From: Epiperipatus broadwayi
Taxonomy: Eukaryota; Animalia; Onychophora
NCBI GenBank assembly: GCA_028023455.1
Contig: JAQFVV010000003.1
Span: 868,001 to 932,000 of the forward strand
Direction of reading: 5' to 3'
DNA: 64,000 bases
Of this stretch, positions 11,801 through 63,180 are shown piece after piece (within the stretch, counting starts at the first letter, position 1; each line of letters starts with the position of its first letter). The notes beneath the pieces are model-generated. The model was given only the letters and a program-made list of their open reading frames with translations, was not told the DNA's origin and ran no database searches. The translations under genes and the position numbers were made by a program.

Positions 11801-12870
11801 TGGTTTAAAAAACAGATGATGCTTGAATGTCGTTTAATCCTCCCAACAAATGACTACAATTTATTACTATTAAAGAATATTTACTGAAGCTCATAAATTA
11901 CTTAAACGTTAGTGAGCCTTAGAAATGTGTTTACTGTAAGAATTACTGTAACAATTTGCAATAAGAAAATTATTTTAATCCAATAGATTATCATTATAAA
12001 ACAAAGTTGATATGAATTTTAATTGAACCTTCTTAGTAATATGCAAAACAAAATATTTTCAAGAATTAGTAAGAAGGTTTTCATTTTTTAATTTTATTTA
12101 CGCATCCCTTTGCAATTGATTTCCATAAATGTTTCCTTCATGTTAGCAAAATGTTTGTAATTAATATGGTTATTTTTATTTAATATTTATATACTGCAAC
12201 TATAAATGAATAACCCAATAATGGGATTAAAAAGTAATAGCATAATTAGTATAAAACTTAAATGATATTAAAGAAAAGAAACATAAAAAAATTCCAGAAC
12301 TCACTCACTCATTGAATACTGATCACAGAGCTGATTGAGGTAACTGCTTAAACATATATATAATTACTAGTATTGATGTGACAACATTCTATTGTTCATG
12401 AAGTACAGAAAAGTGAAATCCGCCCCTAAGGAATATGGTGCTAAACATGTGCCCTTAGTGATGTATTAATAACACATGGTTTAAGTAGAAAATTACTATT
12501 CATCAAAAGAAAAATAAGAGAATGAGGGTTTTCTGAAGATTAAATGTCAATAAAAAAAACTGCTACATTACTCATCATAATATTCAATTTTTTTCACAAA
12601 ATTTGACTTTTTCTTAAATTAACAATGTTAATACTTCTTCTTACTCCCATAAACAATAATCAAAAGAAATTGGAAAAATATAAATCTGCCTAATGATTGT
12701 TTATTGATGTAACATTATTCATTTAAAATTACACTTGTTTGTAGTTAGAACAGGAGTAAAAGAATGTTAAAATTTGGGATTTAAATAACTTGAATGATGC
12801 ATTTTATCTTCAGATTTAATTAAAATGTGTATATCATAGAGAAAATAAAGTTTAATCTCAAATTTTTGGA

Positions 12871-13866
12871 TAATTGCAAGGAAATCAAGTCATACATTAT
12901 GTAACTTAATTTAGTAAGCTTGTACTACAAATGTTATATAATGAGCATACTAATAGCTCTTAACAAGCTTTTCCAAATATTCCTATCCTCAGACCAGTTT
13001 CTAAGCTCTGGTTGTCTTCAGTGAGGCACTAGGATATTCAGGCATTATATTTAAAAATACCAGATCAAGTCTTAGCATTTATCTAACACTAACTATTAAG
13101 TAAAAAAATCATGAATTTTTCAGACATCCATATGTCTTTAAATTCAGCTATCTAACTTAAATAGCCATATAGGACTGAATTATGCTCAGATACACCATAT
13201 ATTAATAGCTGTAGCAATATAAAATCATCAAAGCTTCAGGAACAAAACAATAATTGCAAGGAAATCAAGTCATACATCATGTGACTTAATTTAATAAGCT
13301 TGAGCTACAAATGTTATATAATGAGCATGCTAATAGCTCTTAACAAGCTTTTCTGAAAATTCTTATCCTCAGACCAGTTTCCTAACTCTGGATGTCATCA
13401 GTGAAACACTAGGATATTCAGGCATTAGATTTAAAAATACCAGGTCAAGTCCCAGCATTTATCTAATAGTAAACTAAAGTAGAAAATCTGAAATTTTCAC
13501 AGATTCATATGTCTTCAAATCCAGCTAACTTGATTTCTTTGCAACTGTTGTTTTGCTCTTGAGACTTTGGCAATTTTATATTGTTAAAGATATTAATATA
13601 TATGGCATCTGAACTTAGTTCAATCCTATATGGCTATTTAAATTTCATAGCTGGATTTGAAGACATATGGATGTCTGAAATTTTCAGGATTTTCTACTTA
13701 ATAGTTAACTATAAGATAAATGTTGGGGCTTGACCTGGTATTTTTAAATCTAATGCCTGAATATTCTAGTGCCTCACTGGCAACAGCCAGAGCTAGAAAC
13801 TGGTTTGAGGACAGGGTGTTTGGAAAATCTTGTTAAAAGCTATTAGCATGCTCATTATATAACATT
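12871..13866. repeat. 380-bp unit repeat: one full copy, one partial direct copy, then an inverted copy
   Basis: taattgcaaggaaatcaagtcatac starts at 12871 and 13251 (period 380). Copy 2 breaks at 13530. 13531-13866 is the reverse complement of the unit (e.g. ggtatttttaaatctaatgcctgaatattctagtg versus cactaggatattcaggcattagatttaaaaatacc). Confidence 0.92.
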
Positions 13867-19800: not shown

Positions 19801-20621
19801 AAAAGCCAAACAACAAGTTTATATTACTATATGTAATTATATTTTGTTAATAAAATGTATTTCAGTTTGAATTATTATATTATTATATTTTTTGTCAATT
19901 TTTTTAATTAATTATTAATTAATTTATTACACAATTGTTAAAAAATGACTATTCCTCCAGCTATCTGTTTTATGAATTAGCAGTGTGTGTGACTTGGTTT
20001 CATAATAGCATAGTGTTGTCGGATTTTTAAATTATCACAGTAAGCTTATAAATTTAGACTTTCTCTTGTGCACAATCACATCCTCTGGGGCATCTGCCTC
20101 TGAGCTAGTGCAAAGGTATCATCTTTAATGTCCATTCACTGCATTTAATTTTTTTGTTAAAAAAATTTTAGTTCGTAATTGTCCTGTACACTAATGATAC
20201 CATATGGTCAGAACATTGATGATGTTCAGCTATGCATCAATATTTCAGCATTATCTTTTATTATATTAGCATTTAAGTATGTGCATCCAGATGATTGTTA
20301 TATTTTTTCTAGGTTTGGCAGTGGCTAGATAATTAGTCAGTTTATAATGCAACTCTTTTAGATCCAGTCACAAATGGTGACTGTTAATTGTTGATGATCT
20401 GATTATTTTTTTTAAATGCTGGTAATATTAAATCTTTTTAATTTTATTATTATAATACACTTATTATTATTGCAATGCTTATCTCATGTTCATTTTATAT
20501 ATATACATATATATTCATTTAGTGTTGTTCTTTTTATATTTGATTCTAATTCCTTATTTATATTTACACTCAATTGGGATAATGATATTTTTGCATCTCC
20601 CTACATTTACCCCTACTTTCA

Positions 20622-20625
<4 letters not shown>

Positions 20626-20709
<84 letters not shown>
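20626..20709. repeat. (TA)n microsatellite
   Basis: Direct reading; one AA interruption. Confidence 0.98.
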
Positions 20710-20712
<3 letters not shown>

Positions 20713-21505
20713 AATGAGATGCATCCAATCAACATGATGATATGTAAATAAACATAAAATAAAAATGGAAGAAATTCATCTAGAATAAAGACTGTACACA
20801 CTCATAGGTTGAATTAATATTTATACTAATTTTTTATAACATATTAACATTTTATTGACCAAATTTAATATTTTTTTCTTCAACTATAGCCCATATTTAT
20901 TTATCTTTAATACTAACAATATAGATGTCTTTGAAATATGTATATATAGAAGATAGAATGATATATGTAGCATGAATACACAAGATGTAGACCATTATTT
21001 TATAATTTTCAAATATGTTGAAAACTAATAAAATATCAATTTACATTAATAGTGAGAAAACTTGCCATTTTTTGATTTTAAATGATTCTCAACCCATGCA
21101 TATTTTTGTTAGTTGAAAAATAAGAAGTTTTCTCTAGAAAAAGAGAGGAGACAATTTAGTTTTATCTTGATGAGATTATTTTGAAACAAAAAAAGATAAA
21201 ATTATGAAATAATATTTTTATTTTAAAGTCTTAGTTTTTAATTACACTAAATTCTATCTTATATAATGCTGTAGGATAATTAATATATTATGCTAAATAC
21301 AACAGAACCCAAAAGAAATAAACTCTTTTGAAGGAAGAAAATCTATTGCTGTTCTAAAAGAAAATATTTGGAAAAATTATCACATCTATTAAAATAAATA
21401 TTCATCCAAAAACAACTGAAACAGAGATTATAGTTACAATAAAATAGAATAATACTATGTGTAAATGCATAGTTGGATAATAAACTCCATTATAATCCCT
21501 TAAAT

Positions 21506-31990: not shown

Positions 31991-33419
31991 TAATAACTGA
32001 AATACAATCTTATTAATTTGGAGTATTAAAAAATATGCTTATACATAAAACAAAAAAAGAAGAAACTTTATGAACAGTGAAAAATATAAATAACATCAAT
32101 GCCAATTGTATGAAGATTAAAATGCATTTTAAATCAAGCAAGTTTTTACTTTAATATACCATGAAAATTCATTGTGAAGCCTAACAAGCACATATATGCG
32201 TATATATTTTTACATAAAAAAACTTTTTTTCTATTTTTTTAAAACTTAAAAACAAAATTTGAAAGTAAAATTTATCGACTACATAGAAAAGTTGGAATAA
32301 TATAAACTGAGATAATTAAGATTTAAAATTTTTCTTTTTGTTTTCTGAATAAAAAAAGAATATTAATTAATTGGAATTTATTAGTTTTAATAACTTGCTT
32401 TTACTTCTTCTGTACATTTTATAATATATTCCAATAGCAAAAAAAATAAAGAGAATGTATTTTTTTTTATTTTGTTGAGGAATTTATTAGGAGTTTGACC
32501 GAACTGATCACAATTCATGAAGTCTGGCCTTCTATTAGGGTACCAAAACGTACAGAAAATAAACATCATTATTTGCAATACGATATGTTGAATTATAACT
32601 AATGACTCTATATAAATTATGGCAAATTAGTCCATCAGTGCAGGGCACTTAGTATCTAGATTCTACCTTAACCCAAAGTTTTTCTGGCTAATATTATCAG
32701 TCTATGCTATAATGGCCCTGATAACTTTAGATTAAAAAATAACATAAAGGTATATATTATATAAAAAGTCTATGCCAAAATATTTAAGAAAAACTATGAA
32801 ATATAAAACTTTCTTTTACTATTAGCACAACTTTTATTTAAATAACATTATTTTAAATGTAGTAGATTAAAAAATAAATCTTTCATAAAACCCATGGAAA
32901 TAGATAGAAGTCTCACTTGTTTAAATAAAAAAGATATGATCTTCAAAATAATTTAATATTTGACAATTCCTATTCTTACACAACTTTTCATAATTTCAAC
33001 CAATATATTATAATTTTGTATTACTTTGTTGTTGACTTTTTTAATAATTAATTTAAAATGCAATGAAAGTTATTAGTACTACTGTATATAAATTTACAGG
33101 CAGGCCTCTTTTTTTGGAATCCAGTCACTCTTGCTGTGAATATATAATGGTTAATGTTATTGAGACATTGACAAGTAATTTTGGACATGATATATATCCA
33201 CATTAATAATAAAATTGTTTCAGGACTTCCCCTATTTATTGTTTTTTTTTATATATATTTGAAAAATATCTAAAAAAATCATATAGCATCTTTTATATTC
33301 TTATACACATAGACATTGAAAAGTTCAAATAAAATCAGAATACACAAGGCTATGTTTTGGATTTTCTACATCTTATTAGTTCAGCTAAACCCTAAACCTC
33401 ATCTTTATAATTCACTATT

Positions 33420-33469
33420 TAATAATAACCAATATATATATATATATATATATATGGTTATTATTATGG

Positions 33470-33513
<44 letters not shown>

Positions 33514-33516
33514 ACC
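33420..33516. repeat. Compound (TA)n tracts with inverted-repeat arms
   Basis: taataataacca-(TA)n-tggttattatta, then ggtta-(TA)n-gtaacc. Confidence 0.85.
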
Positions 33517-36500
33517 AGTTGGCTACATGGCTGCATTAAAAGAAAAAGATGATAAGAATTAGATAGTTGGCAGTACATTCCTCAGATTTAATTAAAGGAT
33601 TATTTTATTAATTGGGAAAAGTAATATTTAATTTTCTTAGACTTATTTTTTAAAGGGTTATTAGTTAATTGGATATTTTTAAATCCCCTTATGATAGTGT
33701 GAGAATTATCAAATATTTAATTTGTTAAGTATAATTTTAATATGAAAATTATTTTAATAAGTTGTAAATGATTATAAAGGGGAAACAGAGAATTGTGAAA
33801 GAATGAAAACAAGTTTTTTTACTCTCTCCCTTTGTAGAAGTTATAATTAACTGTTTTAGTTTAAACTATAAAAATGTATTAAGAAAAGAAATATATTATT
33901 TTTCTTTGTTTTTGTATCTTATTTAATTAATGTTAATTTTAATATTCTTTTTGTAAAGAGATTGTTTTATGTTTGAAAGTATTTTTTTGTAAAAGAAAAA
34001 AAATATTTTCAGAGTTATTTTTCAATGTCTTTGATTAAAGAGGTAGATGGGAATTTATTTAATTGGTTGTTGTAGAAATTATCATGTGAGAGACAAAATA
34101 TGATTGGCTTATAGATAAGATTATTCTAAAAAGGAGAAAGAAGCATAAGTCTTTACCAAGCTATTGAATATAATAGCAGAAGTTTTAATCAAGCTTTTAG
34201 CATACTGATTTCTACAATGAAAACCATGTGCTAAATTCAGCTAAAAGTTAGGTATCACCTTTCTCCATGTGACCTATCTTCACTGGAAGAAAATGTTAGA
34301 AAGGTATCCCCTACACTAGTCTGCAACCTTGTCATCAACCAATAGCATAAAGTCTCTGTCTACTTCTGTCTCACCTGGAAATTTAGGACAAAATTTGCAA
34401 TTTTTCATTTACTTGGAATTTCTACAGACCCAGAAAATGACAAATTTAACCAGTCACATGTTTAGGGGCCTTCTGGGGAAAATACAATCAAAAAATTGGA
34501 AATTGCAATTGGAAAGACCTCTATAAACAAGAAATCCATGACTAGATATATTATTTCTTTATGTGTGCACACTATTATTTTTTGCTATTTCTAAAACCCA
34601 GTCAAATTTCTGCTATAAATAGTGAAATAGTTTTAAAGAAAAAAAAATCTGTTGTAAAGTGTTAAAAAAATTTTTTCTTGTTAAGCTGAATCAAAGATTG
34701 ATATCTTTGATTCTGAACATGTTAATTAATTCTTAAATATTTTTAAAAAAATTAAACCAAAGATTGTTATCTTTGATTTTGGAAATATTGTGAAAATAAA
34801 AAGAATCTTAACTATTTTAAAAAAATAGTTTAATGAATTTAGATAACTAAAATCAACTAATTGGTTAATATAATTTTATCAAACTGTATTTTTTTTGATG
34901 AAGTGGATGTTTGAAATTACCTACTATCATGTCATTTTTTGATGTTAATTAATTAGAAATTAAATAATTATTTTTTAAACTAAAAATATGTGTTTAGTTT
35001 TAGGTTCTTTATTCTATCCAATTCCTGTTTCATGAATTGTAGTATGTGTAATCTTATTTCATGACAGCTTATATTCTAGGATTTATTTATTTTTGATGAT
35101 CCCAATAAAGCTATTTATTTATAAGTAGGGGGAGCTTATGATTTACTTAATGTTTTTTAATAAGCTATTTTATTTATTTCTCTCTTGCTCACAATAATAA
35201 ATTATAGAGTTCTTGCTTGCTGGGCTAGATTCACATATAACAGCTATGTAAAAAGAGGGTGTATAGTAGTGTATGGGCATCCAGTTGATAATAGTTCAGG
35301 AGTGGTACAGAGAGAATATTCTTTAAAGTCCATGCACAAAATTTTATTTAGTTTAGTCTCTGTTAAACATTAAGTTTATAGTTGGCTTAACTATTGATTT
35401 ATTTTATAGTTGATCATTCATGAAAATGACTGAGTTATACTTATTTTTAATGCTGATGCATTTAGTTAATTATACTTATACTTAAGATAGTTAATTGTGC
35501 TGATCTCTTAGAGTGATTATATTTTATATTAAATATTGATAGCTAACTTTATATTTATTTTGAACTAGAGTTGATGATGATTTGCCATCACCCCATGTTC
35601 AACCCCAAAAATGGTGGTGGTATTATAAATGTCACCCAACTTGTGGGACCTCTATTTCCATACTGTTACATATGAATATCCAATTGTGGGACATTGTAAC
35701 CACAGATTCTGGTATATTAAATCCCTGGTTTTCTATTAGCATTATAATATGGAAATATTACTATATCAAAAAAATGAATCATGATAATGTTTTCCATATA
35801 TAATTATGTCCAGTATCTATATTAATTAAATGTGATTTGTAATTGCAACTAAGTCCTTGACTGTAAATTGATTATAGTAACATATAATATAATAAAATAA
35901 AAATTATGGTAAAAAATATACCATTTTAAATTAAGATTACCAAAATTTTATTTCAATTAATCATGAAAGATTAAGCTTAGAATGTAGAAAACTAAATAAG
36001 TTAACCTCTAAATCCATGATTGTATGTGAATCTAACTCATTTTATATTTTCCAATAGTTTTCAGGAATAGACACTTTGGTATATTAATTAATTAATAAAC
36101 AATTTTTAAGTAGTTCATTCTAATTTAAAAGGCCATCTCTAGGGTCCCTCCTGAGAAGAACAATAAAAAAATATATTATTTAGATGAAAATATAAAAGGT
36201 ACATTACTTGATTTGTTAATGTTGATTTTTATGAAATTTTTAGGTGTATTTTTTGTCTTATTTTTACTTAAAAACAATAATAGGATGATTAGCTAAGAAG
36301 GCTTGACTTTCTAAAAAATGTTCATGATTTTTCTTTTCTCTCCAATTTGAATTCCACTCATATCTCTTTGACATATCTTAGTCATAAATATGCATATATC
36401 ATTACCCTATGAAGCTTTTCTTGAACTGTAATATATATATTATAAAGGAGGTTGTCATGACAGCAATTTGAAAATGTTAATTGTTATTGCTATAGTGATT

Positions 36501-37033: not shown

Positions 37034-37180
37034 AGATGACAATATAAGGATAAGTGAAATCTTAATTGCATTCAAAAGTCTTGTAAAAGACTTAGAAAAA
37101 GACTACATATGAGATAGATAGTTGTGAAATGATATGGTAGAGACAGCTATGTATTGAAGAAACTAGTTTAAACTTGAATA
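37034..37180 (+). repeat. Second copy of the dispersed repeat at about 945-1110
   Basis: Shared agatgacaatataagga..gaaatcttaa.tg..ttgtaaa..acttagaaa..atatg.ga.atagatag. Confidence 0.6.
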
Positions 37181-39368: not shown

Positions 39369-40999
39369 CTTCTCCTAATGTCTATAATCTTCCATTTGAT
39401 ATATAAGGATAATAATAAGTTTATGGTTTTTGAAGGAAAAAAAATGATTGGATATAAAAGTAAAGGGAAATAAAAGATTAAATGTAAAAAAAGGATGGTG
39501 ACATGTATAGCATTATTTCTGTATCTATGATCTGCAACTTTTGTATCTATGGTTTTAGTTATCAGCAATTCAAAAAAATAGTAAATAAAATATTTAAAAA
39601 TTAAAAATTAATTTTAAAAAATAAATTTTATTTGTTTATTCACTAAGAAAATACAGAATGTATTCACATCAATATATACATATATATGTGCATGTGTGTA
39701 ATATACATTTTCAACATGTATATACAAATGTAGACATATCTTTAGGTAAATTTCAAGATTAAATCTACAAAATGACTATTATTAATAACAATTGATATAC
39801 CATTTAGTTACAGCATAAGACAATAAGGCAATGGTTTTAGCAATATAAAAGTAGGTGTCTATTATTATACATCATGTTTACCCATATATATATATATATA
39901 TATATATTTACCCATATATATATATATATATATATATATATGGGGGGGTGTAAAAACCCATATTATAATATGATTGACTATAAATTCAAATTTTAATAAT
40001 TGCATCAAGGCTTGGAACCAAATGTCTCAATTTCTTGAGAACTACTGTAAATAAAATAGCAAAAGATATGTTTTATTTTATAATAGAATTTAAAGTCTAT
40101 ATTTAAAGTTGTAAAAAATATGATTTCTGAGTCTAATAAAAATGATTTAAAAATTATTTATATATTAATTAAAAGGATATTAGTATTAATGAGTTTTGAT
40201 AGAAATATAATATTTGAAAGCAGCAATTGTGCAATATATGTTGTATAAATATTGAACAACAGCAGATAACATTTGGGAATATGTAGGTGACAATCTAACT
40301 GAAAAGATGTGGTTGGATCAAATGCATGTTAGAGTCATGAAATTTTTTTACATTGTCTACAATAAGAATGACAATTATGTTTCATCCAAAACAAATACTA
40401 TATCAGTAGCAACAGTAAATAGAAATAATAAAATGTTGTTTTGACTGATTTTATTTTATTTTTTAAAAACTATTTGAGTATAAAAACTGTCAATTGTAGC
40501 TCAATTAGAGATATTCCTTTAAAAAAAGACAATGATAAATGAAGAATTTGCCTTTTAGAAACTTGAAAACTAATCAAACAATATTTCATTCAATAGAAAT
40601 GTCATTCATAAGATCATTAGAGGTTGCCATTTCATCTAAAATAATACCTTTCATGGTTTAATGCAGTAGTAGAATATTCCCTTCTATGATTCTCAGATCA
40701 ATTTCAGTTTTGGCATTTCTAGTGCTTAAATTTCTTATAAACTACCAAGCAATAACACCTTTAAGATTATATACTTTTATCTAAAATAATAATATATTAC
40801 TTGGATTGTTTTAAAGCTTAATCTGAAACATAACATATGTACATTACTTTAAAAACCCTTGGAATGATTTTGAATATCAGGCCATTAGCTTAATAGTATA
40901 AAAGAATTGAAGATGGCTACTGAATGTATAGATGCAAGATTAAAGTTTCTCACTGGCAAAATCCAACACCTAATGTCTTTTTATTTTTCAAACATATAA

Positions 41000-41889
41000 T
41001 ATATGGCTCTGGGATAGAGCAAATATAGTAAATTAACTACTCCCAAAATATATGTTTATAGTAATTTCATCACACTATAAACATTAAGCATTAGGGAAAT
41101 TGACTGACAGGTGACCCCAATGGCCACATGAATAGATTTGTGGCTTTAATCACTTACACAGAGGTGATGTGTGGCTTTCTAGTCAGTAAATTGGATGGCT
41201 ATGATGGTAGTATCAATGTTTTATTGAGTTTTACTTTGAAAATTCAAAATTATTGGTATAGATTGGGATGGGGTATTTTTTAAATAGATTGGCTGTAGTT
41301 GAGACCACCTTTCTGAAAGACTCCATCAATTTTTTGAAGTCTTGAATGCTATATCCCAGGTAAGTATTTTTTAAAAAACCCTTTTATCCTAACTATAGTT
41401 TTGAAACAGTTTCTTTTACTTGAATCATAGAATTTAATAGCAAGATATCTTGGATTGGGGAGGTCTGCAAGTCAACCACAGAGTTTCACAGTTTATGTAA
41501 ATTGAGAGCCTCATATTATAATGGTTGGGAATCAATATAGGGAACAATTAAAGTTTGTGGCAGATGAAATTATTGAGCAATCAGAAAAGAATCATTGAAC
41601 CTTTCATTAATATTGCTTAATATTTCTGTTATCAATGTAACATGGGGAAAAGGGAAGCAAGGTTTTCTACATTGTCTTGATTAGATAAGTCAAGGTTTTT
41701 AATATCATTACATGTAGATTTTCTAAATCTACAGAATATCTTTAAATTTGGAATACTAAGGTTGGTTTTAATAATATTATCATAGATGTTTTTTGAGCTG
41801 ATGGAATTGTTGTCAACCTCTTTTTCACATGAATAGCTGACAGTCACAAACATATTTATAATAGATTGTTCTACATGCACAAATGGAAG

Positions 41890-41973
<84 letters not shown>

Positions 41974-42320
41974 TATTATTAAGTTTTTCGTTTTTAATTA
42001 AAAAGTTATAAAACATGCCACTTCTGGTGATGTTTTTATATGAGATTTGGAGGTTTGAATCTAGATAACTTTTAGTTGACATGCAGATGATGTCAAGATT
42101 TTCTGCAGAACTCTTACTACTAGTACCACTACTACTGCTGCTGCTAATGTTCCTACTGGTACTATTACTACCACTACTGTTATTATTAATATTGTTGTTG
42201 GCACCCTCATTATATAATATATATGCATGTGTGAATCCATGTATATGATTAATAATGCACAATGTTATGACTTTTTTGTAAATTTCTAGTGTTTTTATAT
42301 GTGAGTCGATGGTTTTCATA
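41000..42320 (-). mobile_element. Decayed non-LTR retrotransposon ORF2 (APE endonuclease region) interrupted by microsatellites
   Basis: ORF 41825-42319 contains NLDIICMSTKSYLDS (cf. APE D.I.ltETWLD). ORF 41632-41880 contains TCNDIKNLDLS (cf. TR..N.LDL). Interrupted by (TA)n and AGT/AAT repeats. Confidence 0.45.
41891..41968. repeat. (TA)n microsatellite
   Basis: Direct reading. Confidence 0.98.
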
Positions 42321-42549: not shown

Positions 42550-42656
<107 letters not shown>

Positions 42657-45564
42657 TTAATGCTACAACATATTTTGCTGCATTTTTTTGATAAAAATTT
42701 TATTGCAAATTTGATAACATTAAGAACTGTTTCTTTCCCTCTCTCGCTATCCAAAACTAATTTTACAAACTAGTTTTTTATGTGTTTGTATAGACATATC
42801 TGTATGAGAGAAAATATAATGAAACTTACATGCATACACTGGAATAAAATATTTAATTATTGAGGTTTTTAGAATTAAAATGCTATTCATTATTAATGTT
42901 ATGTTTGACATTAACACTTGCTGATTGTTAGCTTTAATATTTGACATTTACATTTAATGTGTGGTATAGCTACACATACTATATATATATATATATTGTA
43001 ACCAGTTGAATTACATAGACCCACTAATATAGTGTGTGTGCATGAATATATATATATAAAGTTGAAAGGAAAACTAAAAATAAACACAGACAAAAATTAT
43101 AGTAGATATTTTCTACATTCATTGAAATAAATAAAAAAATAATAATAATAACTCTGATTTAAAATATTGTTTTATAAATTAGTATTTTAAAAAGGTCTGA
43201 ATAAATATAAATATTGCATTATTATTATTATTACTCTGATTTTGAAATTTAAAAACACCCTATTTTTGAATTTTAATTAATTAAATAAAATTTCTATTTA
43301 TTAGAAATCCCCTAAGTAAAAACATGTATATGAAGGGATTAGTGAGATAAAAATAGAAACTCTGTTTTTAATCAAAGTGTTGTTAACACCTCAGATGATT
43401 TTATAAAAAGAGCTGATAACAAATTATCTCCAGTCTGGATAATAATTTTTGTAAGAACAGTCAGCTGAAAATTGGTTTCAATATTTTACTGCAACTTGAT
43501 AAAGTGCAGCAGTTGGTTTTAGCTGACCAGAGAGTTTGCAGAGAAACTACCATGAACTAATGTTGCTGAAGACAGGAGCTGCTACTATTTTCCTCCACAG
43601 GAGTTTTGGTTTTGAAGCTGGGTCACTTCTGAATCAATAGCCTGAAAAAAAGGGGGGACAAAATAGCTAGCAGAGTTATATAAAGCTTCTATGAAGATCT
43701 AAGGGAGTACAGTCCAGTAGCTGCCTTATAGTTTACTGCAGTTTTGATTCATGAAGCCAGAGTCACTTCAAATGCATCAACTAGCTGATTAAATATGTTC
43801 TAGAAGACAGCTTGACAAATGCTTGGACTACAAAAGTAAGCTCATGGTATGCCAACTAATTACTTGGATAATTTTACCTGAAGATGACAACAAACCTATA
43901 TTACATTTTCTGATGGACCAAAAACCAAGCTTACCAAGAGAAAGCTTGAAGGAATTGGTGTACTGATGCTACTGTTCATCTATGCAAGCAGGAAACCACA
44001 GATAAATACATTGCATGTGTATACATTGAGTTGTATTTTTTTAAATATTCTTATAAAAGACATTTTAACTTCGTAACTGAAAGTAAAATTTGCTCCAGTC
44101 AAATGTTTAAAAGAGAGACGATTTGCTATATATATTTTGCTAAGAAATAATTTTCATATTCATTACAAAAAAAAAAAGGAATATATAATTTAAATGCAAG
44201 CATAATTTTGTTTGAATTAAAATCGAAAAAGCAAATCTTTTAAATTGGTCCAAAAAAAATTGACTATACTTTTGAGAACTTATAGATTGAAACTAATTTT
44301 AAATTGTATCTATATTTTGTTTATACACACGTATAGGTAGGAAATTTATGTATTAGAAAATTATAATATTATTATAACAAATTGGAATAGATAAAAGTCA
44401 GTGTGCGTACATACACGCACACTCATATATGTAAAATTTTAATACTTTTTTTATATTAAATGTCAGTTCATTTATTGAATATTAATTGTATATTATAAAT
44501 CGTGCGTCTGTGCATGTTATATGTAAACTATAGTAATAATATGAATTGTGATTTTGTAAATTAATGTAACAATTTGAATTTTGAATGGTAAATATTTTCA
44601 ATTAATGTAATAACTTGAATTTTGTAGCAATATTGTAAATTGCAGTATAATGACTTATTATTATATATTATTCAAAATCAGACCTTAAATATCTTTTTTT
44701 TTATTGTTATTAATAAATGTATTTAATTGTTAAAAATTGTATTCCATCATCTCTTGTTCACATACAGTAATAGAGCCCATATTCTCTGAGCTAGATTTCG
44801 GACACGGATAAATGGGGATGTGTTTGGTGCTTTGGGCATCCAGAGATGATTAATCATCATCCTGGTTGGCGCAAAAGAGGATACTCTTTAAAGCCCATGC
44901 ACTATTATTTTTTATTTTACTTTAGCCTTTATTAAAAATTTAAGTTTATAGTTGTCCAGTACAAGTGGCCCGAGCATTGATGATGACCAGCATGTTTTAA
45001 ATGTACCAGCATTATTGTTTAGAGTTTTTGATTCTTGTGTATTTTAATGGATGGGCACTAAGATGGTGCATCCAAATTATGTTTATATAATTGCCCAAGC
45101 TGTCAAAGGCTCAATAGTTAGCCTGGTCTACAGAAGACCCATTTCCAATCCAGTCATAAGGTTGACTGTTGATTTATATTTTTATGGTTCAAATCCAGCC
45201 ACAAGATGGTCTGTGATTTTATTCTGATTTATTGTACTAATTTGTTTATTCCCATCATGGATGGTTCTTTTAATATTTACTTATACTTACTTTGACTTAT
45301 TATAATGCTGGTTGAATTTATAATTATGCTTTTAGTTGCTCTTCTTAGTTAACTGGTTGATCTCTCAATGCTCACAGAGATTTTCTAATCTCATATTCTT
45401 ATAAATATTCACTTAAATATTTATACTTAAATATACTTTTGTTAAATATTGATATTTGTAAATATTTCATTTTAAATGGACTGGGAGTGATGATGTTTCC
45501 ATCACCCCAGTTCAATTTTACTTTCCACCAACTTACCACTCCCTATCACCCACCCCATCCCATT

Positions 45565-45601
<37 letters not shown>

Positions 45602-45632
45602 GATGGAGATTTCTTTATATATACGATCTTAC

Positions 45633-45668
<36 letters not shown>

Positions 45669-46779
45669 GGTACTATAAAGAAACTAATACTGTATTATTA
45701 TCTAAGCCTTATGAGTGGTAATTTGTGGATTTGCAATCTTTTGATCACTGTAAATTGCTTCATTCTAATTCTAGGGATCAGTAAAATTTAGGAACAATGT
45801 TATTCCTATATAGTTAATAGCTTATTTTATTAAATTTTGGGTACCACTTATTTTATTACATTTTGGATGCCACCATATTGTAGCACTGACCAATATACCG
45901 ATGGCAAAGCGTAAATCCACATTTATTGTCACATATAAAAATCTATGTTCATAAAAAAGGGAAGCCATTATGATTATCAGAATATTAATGATGAAAACAC
46001 AATCATCAATGAAATATCAAGATTTTATGTAACACCTATAAATTTGATGACAGTAAATGAAAATAACAATAATCGAAAAATAATTAAATTCACTAAATAT
46101 TAAATACAAAACTCATAATAAAAATTATTTTTTCAAGTTGGCTATTATCAAATAGTTCAAATAAAATAGATAATTATTCCTTTATTTAAAAAATATGATG
46201 TTATTATAAATATGTTCCTGTCTTATATCTATAAGAAAGTATAATTAATTTCTTAATATTCTCATCATGGCCTAAAGAGACAGTTTGATTTATGACTCAA
46301 AATGTTGTAATAGTAATCAAAAATGCCTTTTCTTATTATTACAATCATTATTAATAAATAAATGCTTGATAAACAAAAATAAAATATGTATTCTATTCTA
46401 ACTAAACACATGTTGAAGATAAAACTAGATCTTTACATCAGTTAAATGGAAGTTTTACAATGAATTATTTAAAATATAACTAGTCCAAAAATATTCTTAA
46501 TACAAAATTGCAGATTCATACATTTGGCAGTCTTTTTCTGCTTCATTTAGAAAATATTATTAAACTTATGACTTTAATTATAGCCCCGTACATATTCTGA
46601 TCACATGAAAAAATATATCTGACCAAAAACAAAACTCCTTGAGTATATGTGGTAAAAGGAGAGTTATAAGAATATTTTTCCACAAGATAAAAATTGGAAT
46701 AGAGTTGATTAATTATTTATTGTGGTTGTATTTGATAATAATAGATAAATTCATCTTTAATTAAAGATTAAGATGTATC

Positions 46780-55265: not shown

Positions 55266-56524
<1,259 letters not shown>

Positions 56525-56525
56525 A

Positions 56526-56543
56526 TGGCACCCCATGTAGGGC
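56526..56543 (+). other. Primer-binding site, tRNA-Lys(CUU)-type, decayed
   Basis: TGGCACCCCATGTAGGGC versus canonical TGGCGCCCAACGTGGGGC: 14/18 match, two of the four differences are CpG deaminations, and it lies 1 nt after the LTR end. Confidence 0.7.
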
Positions 56544-57066
56544 TACAAAAATAAGGAAAAACCTATAATCTGAGATATATAATATAAAATTTAATGCAAC
56601 TAATAGCAAAGGAGATACTTTTTTTCTTGATCTTTACATATACATAAATGAATAAGCAAGAATGGGTAAAAGTAAATGAAGGATAGGGGTATTGATATAG
56701 GTAGATAAATGGTGCAATTAAACTATCAAAGAGCAAACAAGGCAGTAGTAGAAAAGGGGATCAATGAACATAGTACTGGTATTATTAAATGTTAGAAATA
56801 AAGCAATATAGCATTAAATACAATTGGTAGAAATAAAATTGTATGTAATATTTTAACATTAATTATTTAAAAACAAAGCAAAATATATTTCTCCTAGTCA
56901 TTGGAAATAAAAAAATAGAAAGTATATTATATATATATATGGAATTAAGAAATAGTGAAATAATTAAGGGCAATAAATCATAGATCAGCAAAATGGAAGG
57001 AAGCAGAATACCACCCAATTAGATGCTGATGCCATTAAAGATATTATAAGAAAATTTCAGGTCAAA

Positions 57067-57800
57067 ATGCTAATTAGATTGAAGGGAATAGTGAACAAAA
57101 ATAAAGAAGTGACTAAAGAAAAAAGTCAAGAGTATTCAATGAAGAGAATGGAAAAGGTGGTTAAAGAAGTAGCTCAAAGATTAGATGATTGGCTAATCAG
57201 CCTTAATTGTAAAATTGAGCAAATGAAAATGGAAATTAACAGTAATAAAAAAGAAAATAAGAAAAAACATCAGGGTTTCCAAAAACACATACAGGAGGAC
57301 ATGAAATTAGTACACCATAAAAATAAAAATATAATCATTAAGATTCAAGATGTTCATAGCTTAGCAAAACAGATCAAAAAATTGTGAGTAAAAGCTCAGT
57401 ATGGGAACAAAAATATGAAAATAAATAAAGACAAACAAGACTGCACACTCAGTGAGAAATCATTCATACAGCACATGAGTAATCTAGAGAGATCTTTTGT
57501 AATCAATCCTATGGAAAAGAGGTTAAAGTAGCAATAGCTATTAGCCACTTGCAAGGTGCATTACAAGTATGGTTGAAGACTTTATTTGAGAAGCCAAGAA
57601 GCTTCCCTCTGTATAAGCAAACCTTAATGAGATGTTATTGGAATGAGGACCACCAAGAGACTACAAAACATCAGATTTCACAAGAAAAATGTCATCCAGA
57701 TGAACCATGTGTGCACTCCTTATAAGGCAAATAGTTCAACTTCAGGCCTAAACAGCATATCCACTATCTGAAAATCAGATCATCAGAATCATGATATATA
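57067..57800 (+). pseudogene. gag: Decayed gag of outer element (coiled-coil N-terminus plus Retrotrans_gag-like capsid)
   Basis: Lys/Glu-rich ORF 57067-57387, then FIQHMSNLERSFVIN and, after a frameshift, from 57510 YGKEVKVAIAISHLQGALQVWLKTLFEKPRSFPLYKQTLMRCYWNEDHQ, which fits the HLxGxAxxW..F...Y/FW pattern of gypsy capsid. Confidence 0.6.
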
Positions 57801-57949
57801 ATTTTCCCAAGTCTTATGAAACATCTGTTGATAGACACAGGGTGTAAAACCATTGAGCAGATGGAAACTTTACTCAGTGCTTTTGACAACGAAACTAATA
57901 ATGAAGAGATTGAATTTAAACCCTTCAATAAATTCTATTCCAGAAGGCA

Positions 57950-58230
57950 TGATCAACAAATCACTGTCTTAAAATTGGATTAAACAGGACAGTCACCACC
58001 ATGGTATAGAATAAGTGAAGAATATTTACAGGCAGCATGGAGAAAACATGGGTGATCAGGAGAACATGAAGTGGTTTGAATATAATGAGGAGAATTGGTA
58101 GTGGTCACTGTCACCAGTAAAAGATTCAGAGACAGGGGTAGATCATCAGAAAAAAGATTGGATAGTAAATGGAGGGCTTGGTACAATTAATGACAAGATC
58201 ATCTCCAGAACCATCTACTAGCTATAAAAA
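57950..58230 (-). mobile_element. Possible antisense LINE endonuclease fragment inside the outer element
   Basis: GC-richer insert; minus ORF 57980-58186 contains an SPDHP motif (cf. APE SDH). Confidence 0.25.
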
Positions 58231-58983
58231 AGACAAGGCCTTAATATGTACAATTTTGGGATTTGCCCCATAGACTTTTGGTATTAGATTATAGAAAAAG
58301 AAATAAACATTGTTATATATGTATACTGATTAAGAAATAAACTGAACATTTACTAAAGAAAAAAAATCCCTATTATGACAAAAATAAACCTATAAAAAAT
58401 GAGTGATAAAATGATAAAATTAATTGAATAGAGAATTATTAGTCTGAAGTGCAAATATAGCCCAGACTGACCTAGATATATCCTAACTTGGTAAGTTCAT
58501 TAAACATGGAAAGTGTAATCAGATTAATATATAAAGTAATTTATTACTAAAAGTTTAATATAAAATAGTTAAGAACAAAATCAGCCAATTTATTCTGGTT
58601 TTGATTCTTCATCTGATTGGGAAAGTATTGAACTATTAATATGGTACAATGGGTATTAGCATTTATTGAGGCAATTGAAGAATTCTGAAAGAAAAAAAAA
58701 TATGTGTATAATAATCACATTTTATTAATAATTAGAAAATCTAGTCTTTTGTCCACTCAAATAAAAAAACTATCTATGTATAATTAAAAAATATAGTTAA
58801 TATAATTACCTACAACTAGTGAAAGAAGGCATGGGTTATCTCTCAAGATAAATCTTTTATTTAAAGATGGCCAATTAGAATGTCAAATCACAATAGGTAA
58901 AATTAGAAGATTTATTTAACTCTAGTCATGCAAAAAAAAGGTATAAATAAATTGTTTTTTTAATCAAACAATTTTTTATAAAG

Positions 58984-59656
58984 TGTAAAATATGCATTTT
59001 ATAATTAAACATATATATGAAAGTGCCTTATTCTAAAATATTACTTTTAAAAGACATTTAAATTTTGCTACTGATATTTTAATCATAGACATTAATTAGT
59101 CATTGTCTGATTCAGCGTAAAATGCAATCAATTGTACCAAACTAATTAAACAGATAACGAAGGAATTTAATTAGCAAAATCCAATGTAATTAAATCCCAC
59201 CTTAATTTATGAGTACTCCAGAAAACAAAAGAAAGCAAACCGTTAAAAGAGGGTCCTTTTGAAAGAACCAGGAGAGTGAATACAGAGCTTATTCAGTGAA
59301 CTCTAACAGAGCATCCATTGCAAGGGAATAGCGTGGGAAATGCAAATTACCCTATGTTGAGAAAGGAGAGAATTATAACTTAGAAACTATATGTTCAGGA
59401 TTATAGTGCGAGTATTTTGTTTGTGTGTACATAGTGTACTTTTCTAATACAGCTCAGCAGGAATCACAATTGTTTTAACTTGTATACACCAATCTGTCAT
59501 CACACCCTTAACTTGTAACAGTTGAGAACTTTGTATAAACTATAAACTAGTTAGCATCAAACTATTTGGGGAATTAAACTCTAACTAGTCGTGAATTAAC
59601 ATTTGTGTGCTATAATTAAAGAATCAATATGCAGCAATTGGGGCAGATACATCACA
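58984..59656 (+). repeat. 5' LTR of inner element (673 bp)
   Basis: TG..CA termini; roughly 90% identical to the 3' LTR by eye. Confidence 0.95.
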
Positions 59657-59660
59657 AATC

Positions 59661-59671
59661 TGGCACAGTCA
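59661..59671 (+). other. Primer-binding site, tRNA-Ser-type, CpG-decayed
   Basis: TGGCACAGTCA versus TGGCGCAGTCG (complement of the arthropod tRNA-Ser 3' end): both differences are CpG>CpA. It lies 4 nt after the LTR. Confidence 0.6.
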
Positions 59672-59721
59672 AATTAGTCAAACCTAAAAACCATAGTGAA
59701 TAACCAGAAATTAATAATAAA

Positions 59722-60539
59722 ATGTCAGTTTTCAGACAAAACTCTACTGGAGAGTTCAAGTAGAAAATGTGGCCAATTGGCCACTATACCTGTCACAAAT
59801 TGAAAATTTCTTCATTTTAAATGGCATTGAAAGAAACAAGCAAAAAGTAGTCACACTCTTATGTTTCTCAGGGAAAATATTATTGAAATCACCAATAAAT
59901 TATATCAAAATCCCGAAGATGAAAATGTACTATTCAAGGAATTATCCCAATGGCTAAACAATTTTTTTAGCCCTTGCCCATCCTGCCACATAGCATGCCT
60001 ACAGTTAAAAAATAGAAAATGACTAAATAGTGAAACAATCAAACAATATAATTTAGCTCTCAAGGAGCTAGCGAAAGATTGTGTTTACAGTGATTTCATA
60101 GAAGAAATATTACTAGATCAACTGCTATGGGGAATGGCTGATGACAGGCTCAGACAACAGCTGTTAACAGAGGCATATCTAACCTATGAAAGCACTATAA
60201 AGAAAGGAATAACTTATGAGCTAATTCTAGAACAGTTACAGGTCTTCATATCAAAAGAGAAAATTTATGAGCAAGTTTTCAAAACTGATAAAGCAGAAAT
60301 ACAATCATTTCAATGGGAACCCCAGAGAAATAAACAGAATTAAATGCTACTGCTGTGGGAAAACAGGCCACATAGCTAAAGACTGCAAATGAAAACAAGA
60401 AATGTGTTTCAAATGCTGAACTAAGGGCCACCTTGTATGTGCATACAGACAATCACCAGAAAAGGATGGTTGACAAAGAACATGTAATCCAGACACAAAT
60501 GGTAGAGCATATAGTATTAACTATATATCTGCCAAGGGG
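59722..60539 (+). pseudogene. gag: Decayed gag of inner element with two zinc knuckles
   Basis: NWPLYLSQIENFFILNGI..KVVTLL; ETIKQYNLALKELAKDCVY..LLDQLLWGMADDRLRQQLLTEAYLTYE; KCYCCGKTGHIAKDC (60342-60386) and CFKC*TKGHLVC. Frameshifts and stops are present. Confidence 0.9.
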
Positions 60540-60908
60540 AAAAGAGATAGGACCATTTCACAAGCACAAACAGAAATTATTAAATTACAAAAACAATTTT
60601 AAGAGGAACGGAAAGACTCTGAACAGAAGCAGTATAAAGAGCAAGATTCTCTGAAGGAGCAACTCCAGATTCACATACAGATGATAGATATTTTGGTTGC
60701 AGAAAAAACAGAGCTGCAGTTATTCCTGGCACAAAGTCAGCAGGCCATAAAACAGAAATCAGTTGAACTCAAAGAATTTCAAGGAAGATTGAAGGCTTCT
60801 AGACAATGAATAATAAAACTTCAACAACAAAACTCAGAACTTAGTGGAAAATTGCAAAGTATACTTGCAATGTCAGAATTATCTGAGCAGGTAGAGAATT
60901 GGCAGCTG
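60540..60908 (+). pseudogene. GOLGA2: Captured fragment of Golgin subfamily A member 2 (GM130)-like coding sequence
   Basis: Reads QAQTEIIKLQKQF*EERKDSEQKQYKEQDSLKEQLQIHIQMIDILVAEKTELQLFLAQSQQAIKQKSVELKEFQGRLKASRQ*IIKLQQQNSELSGKL. The core matches the recalled GM130 signature [25 protein letters not shown]..SR. No intron is visible; stops at 60600 (TAA) and 60807 (TGA). Confidence 0.85.
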
Positions 60909-61199
60909 TATGAAATAGAGCCACAAAAAAATGGCCAAAAGTGAAAATGAACAAGACACTTCCAAAGATTTTTTAGAAGAATAGCAATGTTTAACCAGTG
61001 AGCTGCCAGACACAAAAACCATAGAGCAAGGAAAAAATCAGCCTCTTTCCAAGTGGAAGAAAAATGAACTCAGGGCAGCAAGGAAAAACAATTTACACAA
61101 ATTTCAAGGTTACATCAGTTAATTGTAAAAATAAAGTTTTTCTCCAGTTTGGGAAAAGAAAAAATAAAAGCACTGAGGAGTCACAACATGGGGTTTTCT

Positions 61200-61213
61200 G
61201 GAGTAAGAGGAGG
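61200..61213 (+). other. Polypurine tract of inner element
   Basis: GGAGTAAGAGGAGG, 3 nt upstream of the 3' LTR. Confidence 0.8.
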
Positions 61214-61216
61214 TAT

Positions 61217-61828
61217 TGTAAAATATGCATTTTAAAATTAAATGTACATACAAAAGTGTCTTATTTTAAAATATTACTGATTCAGCTTAAAATGCAATCA
61301 ATTGCACCAAACTAATTAAACAGATAATGAAGGAATTTAATTAGCAAAATCCAATGTAATTAAATTCCACCTTAATTTATAAGAGTACTCTAGAAAACAA
61401 AAGAAAGCAAACTGTTAAAAGAGGGCTCTTTTGAAAGGACCAAGAGAGTAATACAGAGCATATTCAGTGAACTCTAGTGGAGCATCCATTGCAAGGAAAC
61501 AGCATGGGAATTGTGAATTACCCTACATTGAGAAAGGAGATAATTAAGATGTAGAAACTATACATTCAGGATTATAGTGTGAGTATTTGTTATTGTGTGT
61601 ACATAGTGTACTTTTCTAATACAGCTCAGCAGGAATCAGAACTGTTTTAACTTGTATATGTCAATCTCTCATCACACACTTAACTTGGAACAGTTGAGAA
61701 CTTTGTATAAACTATAAACTAGTTAGCATCAAACTATTTGGGGAATTAAACTCTAACTAGTCATGAATTAATATTTGTATGCTGTAATTGAAGAATCAAT
61801 ACGCAGCAAACAGGGTGGATACATCACA
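61217..61828 (+). repeat. 3' LTR of inner element (612 bp, about 61-bp deletion relative to the 5' LTR)
   Basis: Same termini as the 5' LTR; lacks the segment between ATATTACT and GATTCAGC present at about 59046-59108. Confidence 0.95.
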
Positions 61829-62035
61829 TAAAGTACACTTTTTTTACTGCTATAAAGATTATATTATTATTACAGCCAGAAATGTATACTATATTTAGAT
61901 AATTTTAAACACACATTAATATACCTATTGCATGGTATTAAATACCCATAAGAATAAAGAAAGAAAAATTAAGACAAGGTGAATGAATAGAAGAATAGCA
62001 AGAGTATATATAAAGTGATCCTGGGAGAGTTGGAT

Positions 62036-63180
62036 TGTTTTGTCTTCTAGTTCGAGATTGCTGAAATAGAAAAAAAAAAGATCTGTAGAAAAGTGTAAAA
62101 CTGAATTATCATGTGGAAGAGCCTATCTACATTATGGAAATGACACAAATGCATTGCTAAACCCTCTTATACATTCATCATTGCCTTCTTTTATACTCTT
62201 CTGATGAAAAGATGCTTTGATTCCAGGTGTGCCTATATTACACCAAGGATACCACCAGGTTTAAAACTGAATAAATTCATCGAAGAAATTATGAAAAAGA
62301 TAATAGTAAATAAGGAACCTTAAAATCCATCATGGCCATGGTAACATTGCAAACAGCTATCTAGTGCGGAATAATCAATATTAAGATCTAAAAATTATAT
62401 AATTGTGAAAGCTTTCTATTTAATTCTTAGTTCTTGACAAAATATATAAACTTTAAACAAATAAACTAGAACTTAATAATGAACATTCTCAAGAGAAATT
62501 TATTATTGTCAAAAATGCAAGAAAATAAAGTAAACATTTTTGGATAAATATTATTGGTATTAATTTCTACTAATAATTATATGTAATCTATATGTATTAT
62601 TACTATTTAAGAAGGATGTGTGCAAGTGAATAGATTCCAACTTTATTACTTTGTTATTTATGTTAAGTGTTATTTAAAAATTAGTATTCAGTAATATTCA
62701 CAGTTCTTTAATTACCTCTAGGAATGAATGTTAATATTCTTAATTAGTTTACGATATTAGAATAGGGAACGATTCCCCAAAAAGAATAATAATGAGTTAA
62801 CTAACTTTGAGACAGTGCATTCATTGGATGCCTTCACTGAAGCTGGCACCTATAAAAAAATAAAAGCTGCTCTCTAGTTTAAAAAAAAGTGATACAAGAT
62901 CAAATAAAAGTACATTTGAATTTCTAGTATATATGATACTATGTCCTGGGGTTTGGGTGGCCAGGAAAAATAACCACGGCTTCCAAATAATTCATTAATT
63001 AGATATTTGTTTGAGGTCAGGATTTGGTCATTCTAGAATTATTAATCATATATATATACGTCTAATGGTAAATAAAATATATAGGTGTGAATATATGGGC
63101 GTGAATTAATATATATATAGGTTAAAATCCCGTATGAAATCGGTATAGAGATGTAAAATATATATATATATTTGGTTTAA
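62036..63180 (+). repeat. 3' LTR of outer element
   Basis: Direct repeat of 55266-56524 (e.g. gattgctgaaatagaaaaa, aattcttgacaaaatatataaactttaaa, tttaattacctctaggaatgaatgttaata are shared). Confidence 0.8.

Follow-up and report, generated by a model that had tools for sequence, protein, structure and literature searches.

A Decayed LTR Retrotransposon of Epiperipatus broadwayi with an Intron-Free GM130 Fragment in Place of pol

Structure of the Element and Its Surroundings

The stretch of Epiperipatus broadwayi DNA analysed here (referred to as the window) has a length of 64 kb. At positions 58984–61828 it contains one complete but non-autonomous LTR retrotransposon with a size of 2.85 kb, which was inserted as a single unit and whose features all lie on the + strand. 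The element is delimited by a 5′ LTR of 673 bp (58984–59656) and a 3′ LTR of 612 bp (61217–61828), which were identified by repeat alignment and both have the form TG...CA. The identical five bases TAAAG adjoin its two ends (58979–58983 and 61829–61833) as a target site duplication (TSD). The LTRs are approximately 90% identical (90% over 553 bp plus 87% over 62 bp), corresponding to a K2P distance of 0.105. The 5′ LTR carries about 61 extra bases (~59046–59106) that are absent from the 3′ LTR, an indel that occurred after insertion. A PBS-like stretch starting with TGG is found four bases 3′ of the 5′ LTR (59661–59678), and a polypurine tract adjoins the 3′ LTR (61200–61213); both were recognised by reading the sequence, and for the former the window offers no tRNA gene for comparison.

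The interior of the element comprises only 1560 bp. Its 5′ part is occupied by a broken, putative gag remnant that includes a nucleocapsid part (59721–60440). This assignment is based on the position of the region and on a CCHC zinc knuckle of the nucleocapsid at 60339–60389 (Pfam PF00098, zf-CCHC; E = 7.7e-6, 26.2 bits versus a cut-off of 20.8), which is followed on its 3′ side by a second, interrupted knuckle (~60405–60440). On its A-rich sense strand the region remains open over long distances, and one open stretch spans 106 codons (P ~1e-4 from composition). Beyond the knuckle, the gag pieces, including the capsid part, yielded no other family or structure match in Pfam, PDB, and protein searches, and they did not match the BEL/Pao gag model DUF1759 (PF03564) at E ≤ 1. 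An AF2 model of the gag piece was all-helical, at a low confidence (pLDDT 48).

The nucleocapsid is connected by a linker (60441–60563), which contains a purine-rich run at ~60533–60551 and showed neither a family match nor similarity to GM130 orthologues, to a coding fragment derived from GM130/golgin A2 (60564–60941). This fragment is intron-free and has two in-frame stops, no frame change, and one gap of approximately 42 codons in comparison to orthologues. The remaining interior is an A-rich tail (60942–61199) without a protein-family match or similarity to GM130 proteins, which is either a 3′ untranslated part belonging to the element itself or additional captured RNA. It contains two AATAAA strings, compared to ~0.9 expected by chance (an estimate from base composition), and an A-rich patch at ~61151–61172. 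With regard to the possibility that 60921–61216 represents a GM130 3′ UTR, the region had no significant match in two chelicerate loci, a comparison that is uninformative at such evolutionary distance.

An earlier note on this DNA had placed a GM130 segment within an LTR retrotransposon. The anatomy of the element agrees with this placement, as the segment lies between two LTRs that are bordered by one common 5-bp TSD and is located 3′ of a gag remnant with a CCHC knuckle. The note had further proposed that the fragment stands in place of pol. In line with this proposal, protein-family searches of the element interior detected no pol-family match, neither to protease nor to reverse transcriptase, RNase H, or integrase, and the absence of pol from 58984–61828 makes the element non-autonomous.

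The window has a G + C content of 25% (range 21–33%) and a CpG observed/expected ratio of 0.18; the GM130 loci of Argiope (26%) and Centruroides (28%) have G + C contents close to this value. Past 56 kb, A predominates over T on the + strand, with an AT skew of 0.14–0.24. An A-rich sense strand is common in retroelements. The GM130 element seems to be nested in an older LTR-like element, whose interior (56516–58978) is A-rich on the + strand as well. Older direct repeats with a length of ~1.05 kb and an identity of 80.5% (55266–56286 and 62036–63080, ending at ~56330 and ~63120, respectively) enclose the GM130 element; both start with TG, and a purine-rich run precedes the right copy. Within the interior of the outer element, 56977–57384 (+) is an open stretch of 136 codons that is lysine-rich and coiled-coil-like, and 57483–57722 is an open stretch of 80 codons. 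Open stretches of these lengths are very unlikely at such base composition, and neither of them had a Pfam match or a homologue in a length-limited protein search.

The same type of length-limited search, the range of which does not include full-length relatives, revealed no short close copies of the GM130 piece and the gag piece. Exact look-up of two ORFs of the window returned no record, metagenome scans with LTR strings gave no match, and the Argiope GM130 locus and the window have no repeats in common. Elsewhere in the window, a tandem-like duplication of ~223 bp with 90% identity and a spacing of 380 bp was observed (12870–13092 and 13250–13472), as well as a dispersed 94-bp repeat with 73% identity (944–1037 and 37034–37127) that is possibly a fragment of another repeat family. 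Simple repeats are represented by numerous long (TA)n runs, a single (GA)n run, and a single trinucleotide run; examples of such sites are 20605–20750, 33413–33530, 39861–39975, 41857–42015, 42560–42700, 45560–45680, and 56345–56470. Searches of the 64 kb for tRNA genes and Rfam families were negative, and a convincing host exon was likewise not encountered.

Identity of the GM130-Derived Fragment

The protein strings that had been quoted in the earlier note as resembling GM130 are all present in the reading frame starting at 60540, which has two in-frame stops in 123 codons, whereas each other frame has eight to nine. A 68-residue core (60603–60806) was used as phmmer query against 1.84e9 representative proteins and obtained 166 matches at E ≤ 1e-3, 11 of them at E ≤ 1e-10, and a best E-value of 3.7e-15, which is far past chance and upholds the reported likeness to GM130/GOLGA2. 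The best matches are mostly proteins of 860–940 residues that are aligned at a constant place, at approximately residues 150–270, and in eight of the ten best the golgin A2 conserved domain (Pfam PF15070) follows downstream of the matched stretch. Their source names read "golgin subfamily A member 2(-like)" and stem from Tachypleus, Centruroides, Argiope, Nymphon, Ixodes, Lingula, Falco, and others. The remaining matches that were checked, both short and very long ones, are GM130 genes or pieces of them, and transposon domains occurred in none of the 46 short and none of the seven long other matches, save one gene-model fusion.

When ten orthologues were compared by tblastn to all 64 kb, matches were confined to 60564–60920 and to one frame, with E-values down to 2.8e-22. 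Since these full-length orthologues match nothing outside this region, the window contains a fragment derived from the GM130 family and not a GM130 gene. The reading frame of the segment is not intact, the intron-bearing structure of the orthologues is absent, and the pieces of the window matched neither PF15070 nor the C-terminal GRASP-binding motif (PF19046) in Pfam. The similarity to GM130 extends from approximately 60564 to 60941 and is slightly wider than the bounds of 60540–60908 that had initially been given.

The resemblance could in principle reflect coiled-coil composition rather than GM130 ancestry, but this explanation is refuted by the results given here. The core alone retrieved only weak coiled-coil families from Pfam (TTC3, HAP1_N) and no GM130, and a PDB sequence search was blank; these blanks are explained by the location of the conserved stretch upstream of, and outside, the Pfam model. 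A generic coiled-coil bias does not account for the strength of the best match in a database of this size, for the fact that the top-ranked matches that were named or scanned and all long or short ones checked are golgin A2 proteins or fragments, or for the alignment of the full-length matches at the same place. Furthermore, 16 columns are conserved to at least 90% in a set of 55 orthologues, and the window agrees with 14 of them; it also matches two GM130 exons on the nucleotide level.

Relation to the Exon Structure of GM130 Genes

The fragment was compared to the GM130 loci of two chelicerates, the spider Argiope bruennichi (L001) and the scorpion Centruroides sculpturatus (L002). In both loci the exon that terminates in "...KQKAG" is followed by a GT donor, which is placed at the same codon in the two genes, and the AG acceptor is likewise shared. 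The intron at this site has a length of 808 bp in Argiope and ~1.26 kb in Centruroides. The window fragment runs uninterrupted across this common intron position, and in nucleotide comparisons the two exons were matched separately, at a distance of 14–40 bases in the window versus 0.8–1.3 kb in the genes. In short ORFs on genomic contigs of other arthropods, the likeness to GM130 stops at the same "...KQKAG" point. Crossing a conserved intron position without a break indicates spliced RNA as the source of the fragment, provided that the donor gene had this intron. The proposal of an intron-free capture from spliced mRNA, made in the earlier note, is thus borne out by an intron conserved in spider and scorpion, and the opposite case that had been envisaged, colinearity with genomic sequence, does not apply to the two chelicerate loci, because the fragment matches their exons and not intron-bearing DNA.

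An internal deletion had also been suspected before the QQQNSELSGKL segment, and it is supported by a search with the downstream piece (60810–60941) alone, as its best placement in at least 19 orthologues is 42 residues past the colinear position. Averaged over 55 orthologues, the local score of this piece does not rise above background at offset 0, and its maximum lies at +36 to +48. A gapless, colinear placement, which is what tblastn suggests by extending through this piece, was therefore rejected. In the chelicerate genes, the missing residues correspond to the remainder of one exon and to the small exon that follows it.

Reading Frame, Decay, and Divergence

The zinc knuckle is in frame with the GM130-derived part, and over 60231–60944 their common frame contains six stops in 238 codons versus ~19 expected from composition. 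This suggests that 60231–60944 was formerly an open Gag-GM130 fusion frame. Of the damage that is visible today, gag, nucleocapsid, and linker together account for two frame changes and four in-frame stops, and the GM130-derived part for the two in-frame stops mentioned above. The core is 63–68% identical to chelicerate GM130s, which are 78–87% identical among themselves. This divergence is larger than the age of the LTRs (K2P 0.105) predicts for a capture at the present insertion, which implies either that the GM130 sequence had been captured before the present copy arose or that the donor lineage is not represented among the sampled sequences.

A Parallel Case in Ixodes

A single-exon gene of Ixodes scapularis (P0028; locus L003 in CM063355.1 of GCA_031841145.2) is annotated as "golgin subfamily A member 2-like". 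This locus is occupied by an LTR element of the BEL/Pao type with a length of 3.9 kb (L003, 7444–11343), which has TG..CA repeats, a 5-bp duplication (ACCTT), and a TGG-initiated stretch 3′ of the 5′ repeat. The gag of the tick element is intact (Pfam DUF1759, E = 5.6e-31), and in an ORF of 349 residues a protease-like tail runs in frame into ~200 intron-free GM130 residues. This GM130 fragment is located where reverse transcriptase and integrase would be expected, and it includes the same conserved motif as the window fragment. A junction of the same type was found in Ixodes persulcatus (P0043).

The tick and window elements are alike in having LTRs, a 5-bp TSD, a gag, and, 3′ of it, an intron-free, in-frame GM130 fragment. 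They differ in that the tick gag belongs to DUF1759 whereas the window gag does not match this model, and in that the tick junction lies after a protease-like part and ~29 residues further into GM130. In addition, the tick element captured ~200 residues without the 42-residue gap, has intact ORFs, and is young. BLASTP of the tick gag against the window gag was blank. As the gags are unrelated in sequence and the junctions differ, the two captures are considered independent, and the overlap of the captured regions is attributed to ascertainment, since that motif was used in the search.

The GM130 part of the tick element is 86% identical to another intron-free GM130 copy of I. scapularis (P0152, L004). 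Over 198 codons the nucleotide identity of the two is 90% and dN/dS is 0.22, and such captures may thus be retained. The latter copy (P0152/P0011; L004, 501–1700, in CM063351.1) is itself annotated as "golgin subfamily A member 2-like" and encodes 399 residues in a single exon that corresponds to about ten spider exons. It is likely another partial GM130 retrocopy, as far as the 500 bp of flanking sequence reveal. Several degenerate GM130-like sequences cross the same exon junction and have changes at otherwise invariant positions (P0029, a 10-member cluster from at least 15 short Logan contigs; P0055; and P0072). These are possibly further retrocopies or transcribed pseudogenes of a tick-like species. 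A literature search found no publication linking GM130/GOLGA2 with retrocopies or with tick retrotransposons.

Origin of the Chimeric Element

The sequence at 58984–61828 is a dead copy of a chimeric LTR element that most probably obtained its GM130 fragment by LTR-mediated retroposition, i.e., by template switching during reverse transcription. The interior retains gag and nucleocapsid, and approximately 125 codons of spliced GM130 mRNA take the place of protease, reverse transcriptase, and integrase. The setting would be a virus-like particle of an autonomous relative in which GM130 mRNA, presumably from the host's own gene, was co-packaged. Reverse transcriptase working on the element RNA would have jumped to the GM130 mRNA and then back to the element RNA, and the gap of ~42 codons possibly records one more jump inside the GM130 mRNA. 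The resulting cDNA with both LTRs would then have been inserted by integrase as one unit, giving rise to the 5-bp duplication. With the fragment joined in the frame of the nucleocapsid, the original element probably coded for a fusion of Gag with the GM130 coiled-coil, and the present copy has decayed. The fragment stems from the interior of the mRNA with truncation on either side, has sense orientation, and does not end in poly(A), features that are hallmarks of LTR-mediated retrocopies (Tan et al., 2016; PMC5131818).

The 5′ junction deserves consideration with regard to how the GM130 sequence was joined to the element. Detectable homology begins at 60564–60582, and the corresponding exon, the first residue of which is 188 in Argiope, starts at 60567 when projected onto the window. 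At a resolution of a few codons, the junction may hence coincide with an exon border, and upstream of the fragment the preceding exon's conserved motif is missing. Both observations would fit read-through and splicing as in retroviral oncogene capture, in which an element located upstream of the fragment's first exon would have been transcribed into the gene and an element donor spliced to the exon acceptor, so that only the 3′ junction would stem from a template switch. This route is nevertheless regarded as unlikely. With a resolution of roughly ±5 codons and exons of ~50 codons on average, the coincidence is estimated to occur roughly once in five cases, and the exon borders are those of Argiope, which may not be those of the host. 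Moreover, switch points near exon junctions are also known under pure template switching (Tan et al., PMC5131818).

Since one 5-bp TSD surrounds the whole unit, the GM130 fragment was aboard at integration, unless it was inserted later. A later insertion would mean that a block of GM130 cDNA (60546–61150) was put into a gag-only LTR element by the machinery of another retroelement or by repair. The fragment and the tail are bracketed by a 9-base purine-rich direct repeat, GGGAAAAGA (60537–60545 and 61151–61159), which is suggestive of such an event in that no repeat of this length was found in 92 neighbouring control pairs, and the AATAAA strings and the A-rich patch are situated near the 3′ end of the block. 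However, a repeat of this length was reached in 40 of 500 shuffles (8%), the right repeat is not immediately preceded by a poly(A) run, and the mRNA-internal position of the fragment is unlike that of the 3′-anchored pseudogenes made by LINEs. The fragment also has the reading frame and orientation of the nucleocapsid, and the tick element has the same architecture without such a repeat. A secondary insertion is therefore considered improbable, even more so than read-through, and capture by template switching before integration is the preferred reading.

Comparison with Known Gene-Capturing Elements

Capture of spliced gene fragments by LTR elements is established in animals, plants, and yeast (PMC5131818). 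Tan et al. (2016, Genome Res; PMC5131818) described LTR-mediated retrocopies in Drosophila, mosquito, zebrafish, chicken, and mammals. These are partial, intron-free, truncated at both ends, and devoid of poly(A), take the place of part of the internal ORFs with both LTRs flanking, and are in sense orientation and often in frame, and the whole unit can act as a non-autonomous element; the underlying template switches of reverse transcriptase are guided by microsimilarity (PMC5131818). The window element likewise has an intron-free partial mRNA copy that replaces part of an internal ORF and is flanked by both LTRs. It differs from the cases of Tan et al., which are young and for which junction microsimilarity and parent genes were verified, in being an old (K2P 0.105) and decayed copy, and the very AT-rich host genome of the window is not part of their sample. 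According to the summary in PMC5131818, maize Bs1 resembles the window element in being an LTR element in the interior of which exon fragments of host genes are joined to gag-like sequence and pol is lacking; Bs1 comprises fragments of three plant genes and is known in several copies with common switch points, whereas the window contains a fragment of one gene.

CopiaMBD, an arthropod LTR family with a host-derived protein module, is autonomous, and the function of its domain was tested (de Mendoza et al., 2019; PMC6673714). The window element, in contrast, has lost pol. A further similarity concerns the exchange of replication genes for host sequence. In acute transforming retroviruses, replication genes have given way to spliced coding sequence of the host, often in the form of a Gag fusion, and the virus is thereby rendered defective. 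The window element shares with them the spliced host sequence in place of replication genes, but it shows no sign of an infectious virus, of env, or of a host effect, and the captured piece is a short coiled-coil and not a signalling domain.

Implications

The window element is a new example of a known gene-capture mechanism and not a new phenomenon. It provides a clean and fully delimited animal case in which the polymerase was swapped for part of a spliced host gene, and it extends LTR-mediated retroposition to a very AT-rich genome; taken alone, it is a catalogue entry. The tick parallel is the more useful lead, as it consists of a young element with open frames, a different piece of GM130, and a substitution pattern that suggests constraint.

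A more far-reaching reading, which is tentative and at present rather unlikely, is that LTR retrotransposons acquired the GM130 coiled-coil repeatedly and kept it in Gag or Gag-protease fusions for the benefit of the element, the window copy being a decayed member of such a family. It is prompted by the common frame of fragment and nucleocapsid in the window, the independent tick family in two Ixodes species, and the dN/dS of 0.22 in ticks. The benefit could consist in multimerisation, in directing Gag to cis-Golgi membranes, or in interference with the GM130 of the host. If GM130 fragments were indeed repeatedly captured and conserved in Gag fusions, this would suggest that retroelements make use of a Golgi tether, and exon shuffling by LTR elements could also be studied in a tractable example.
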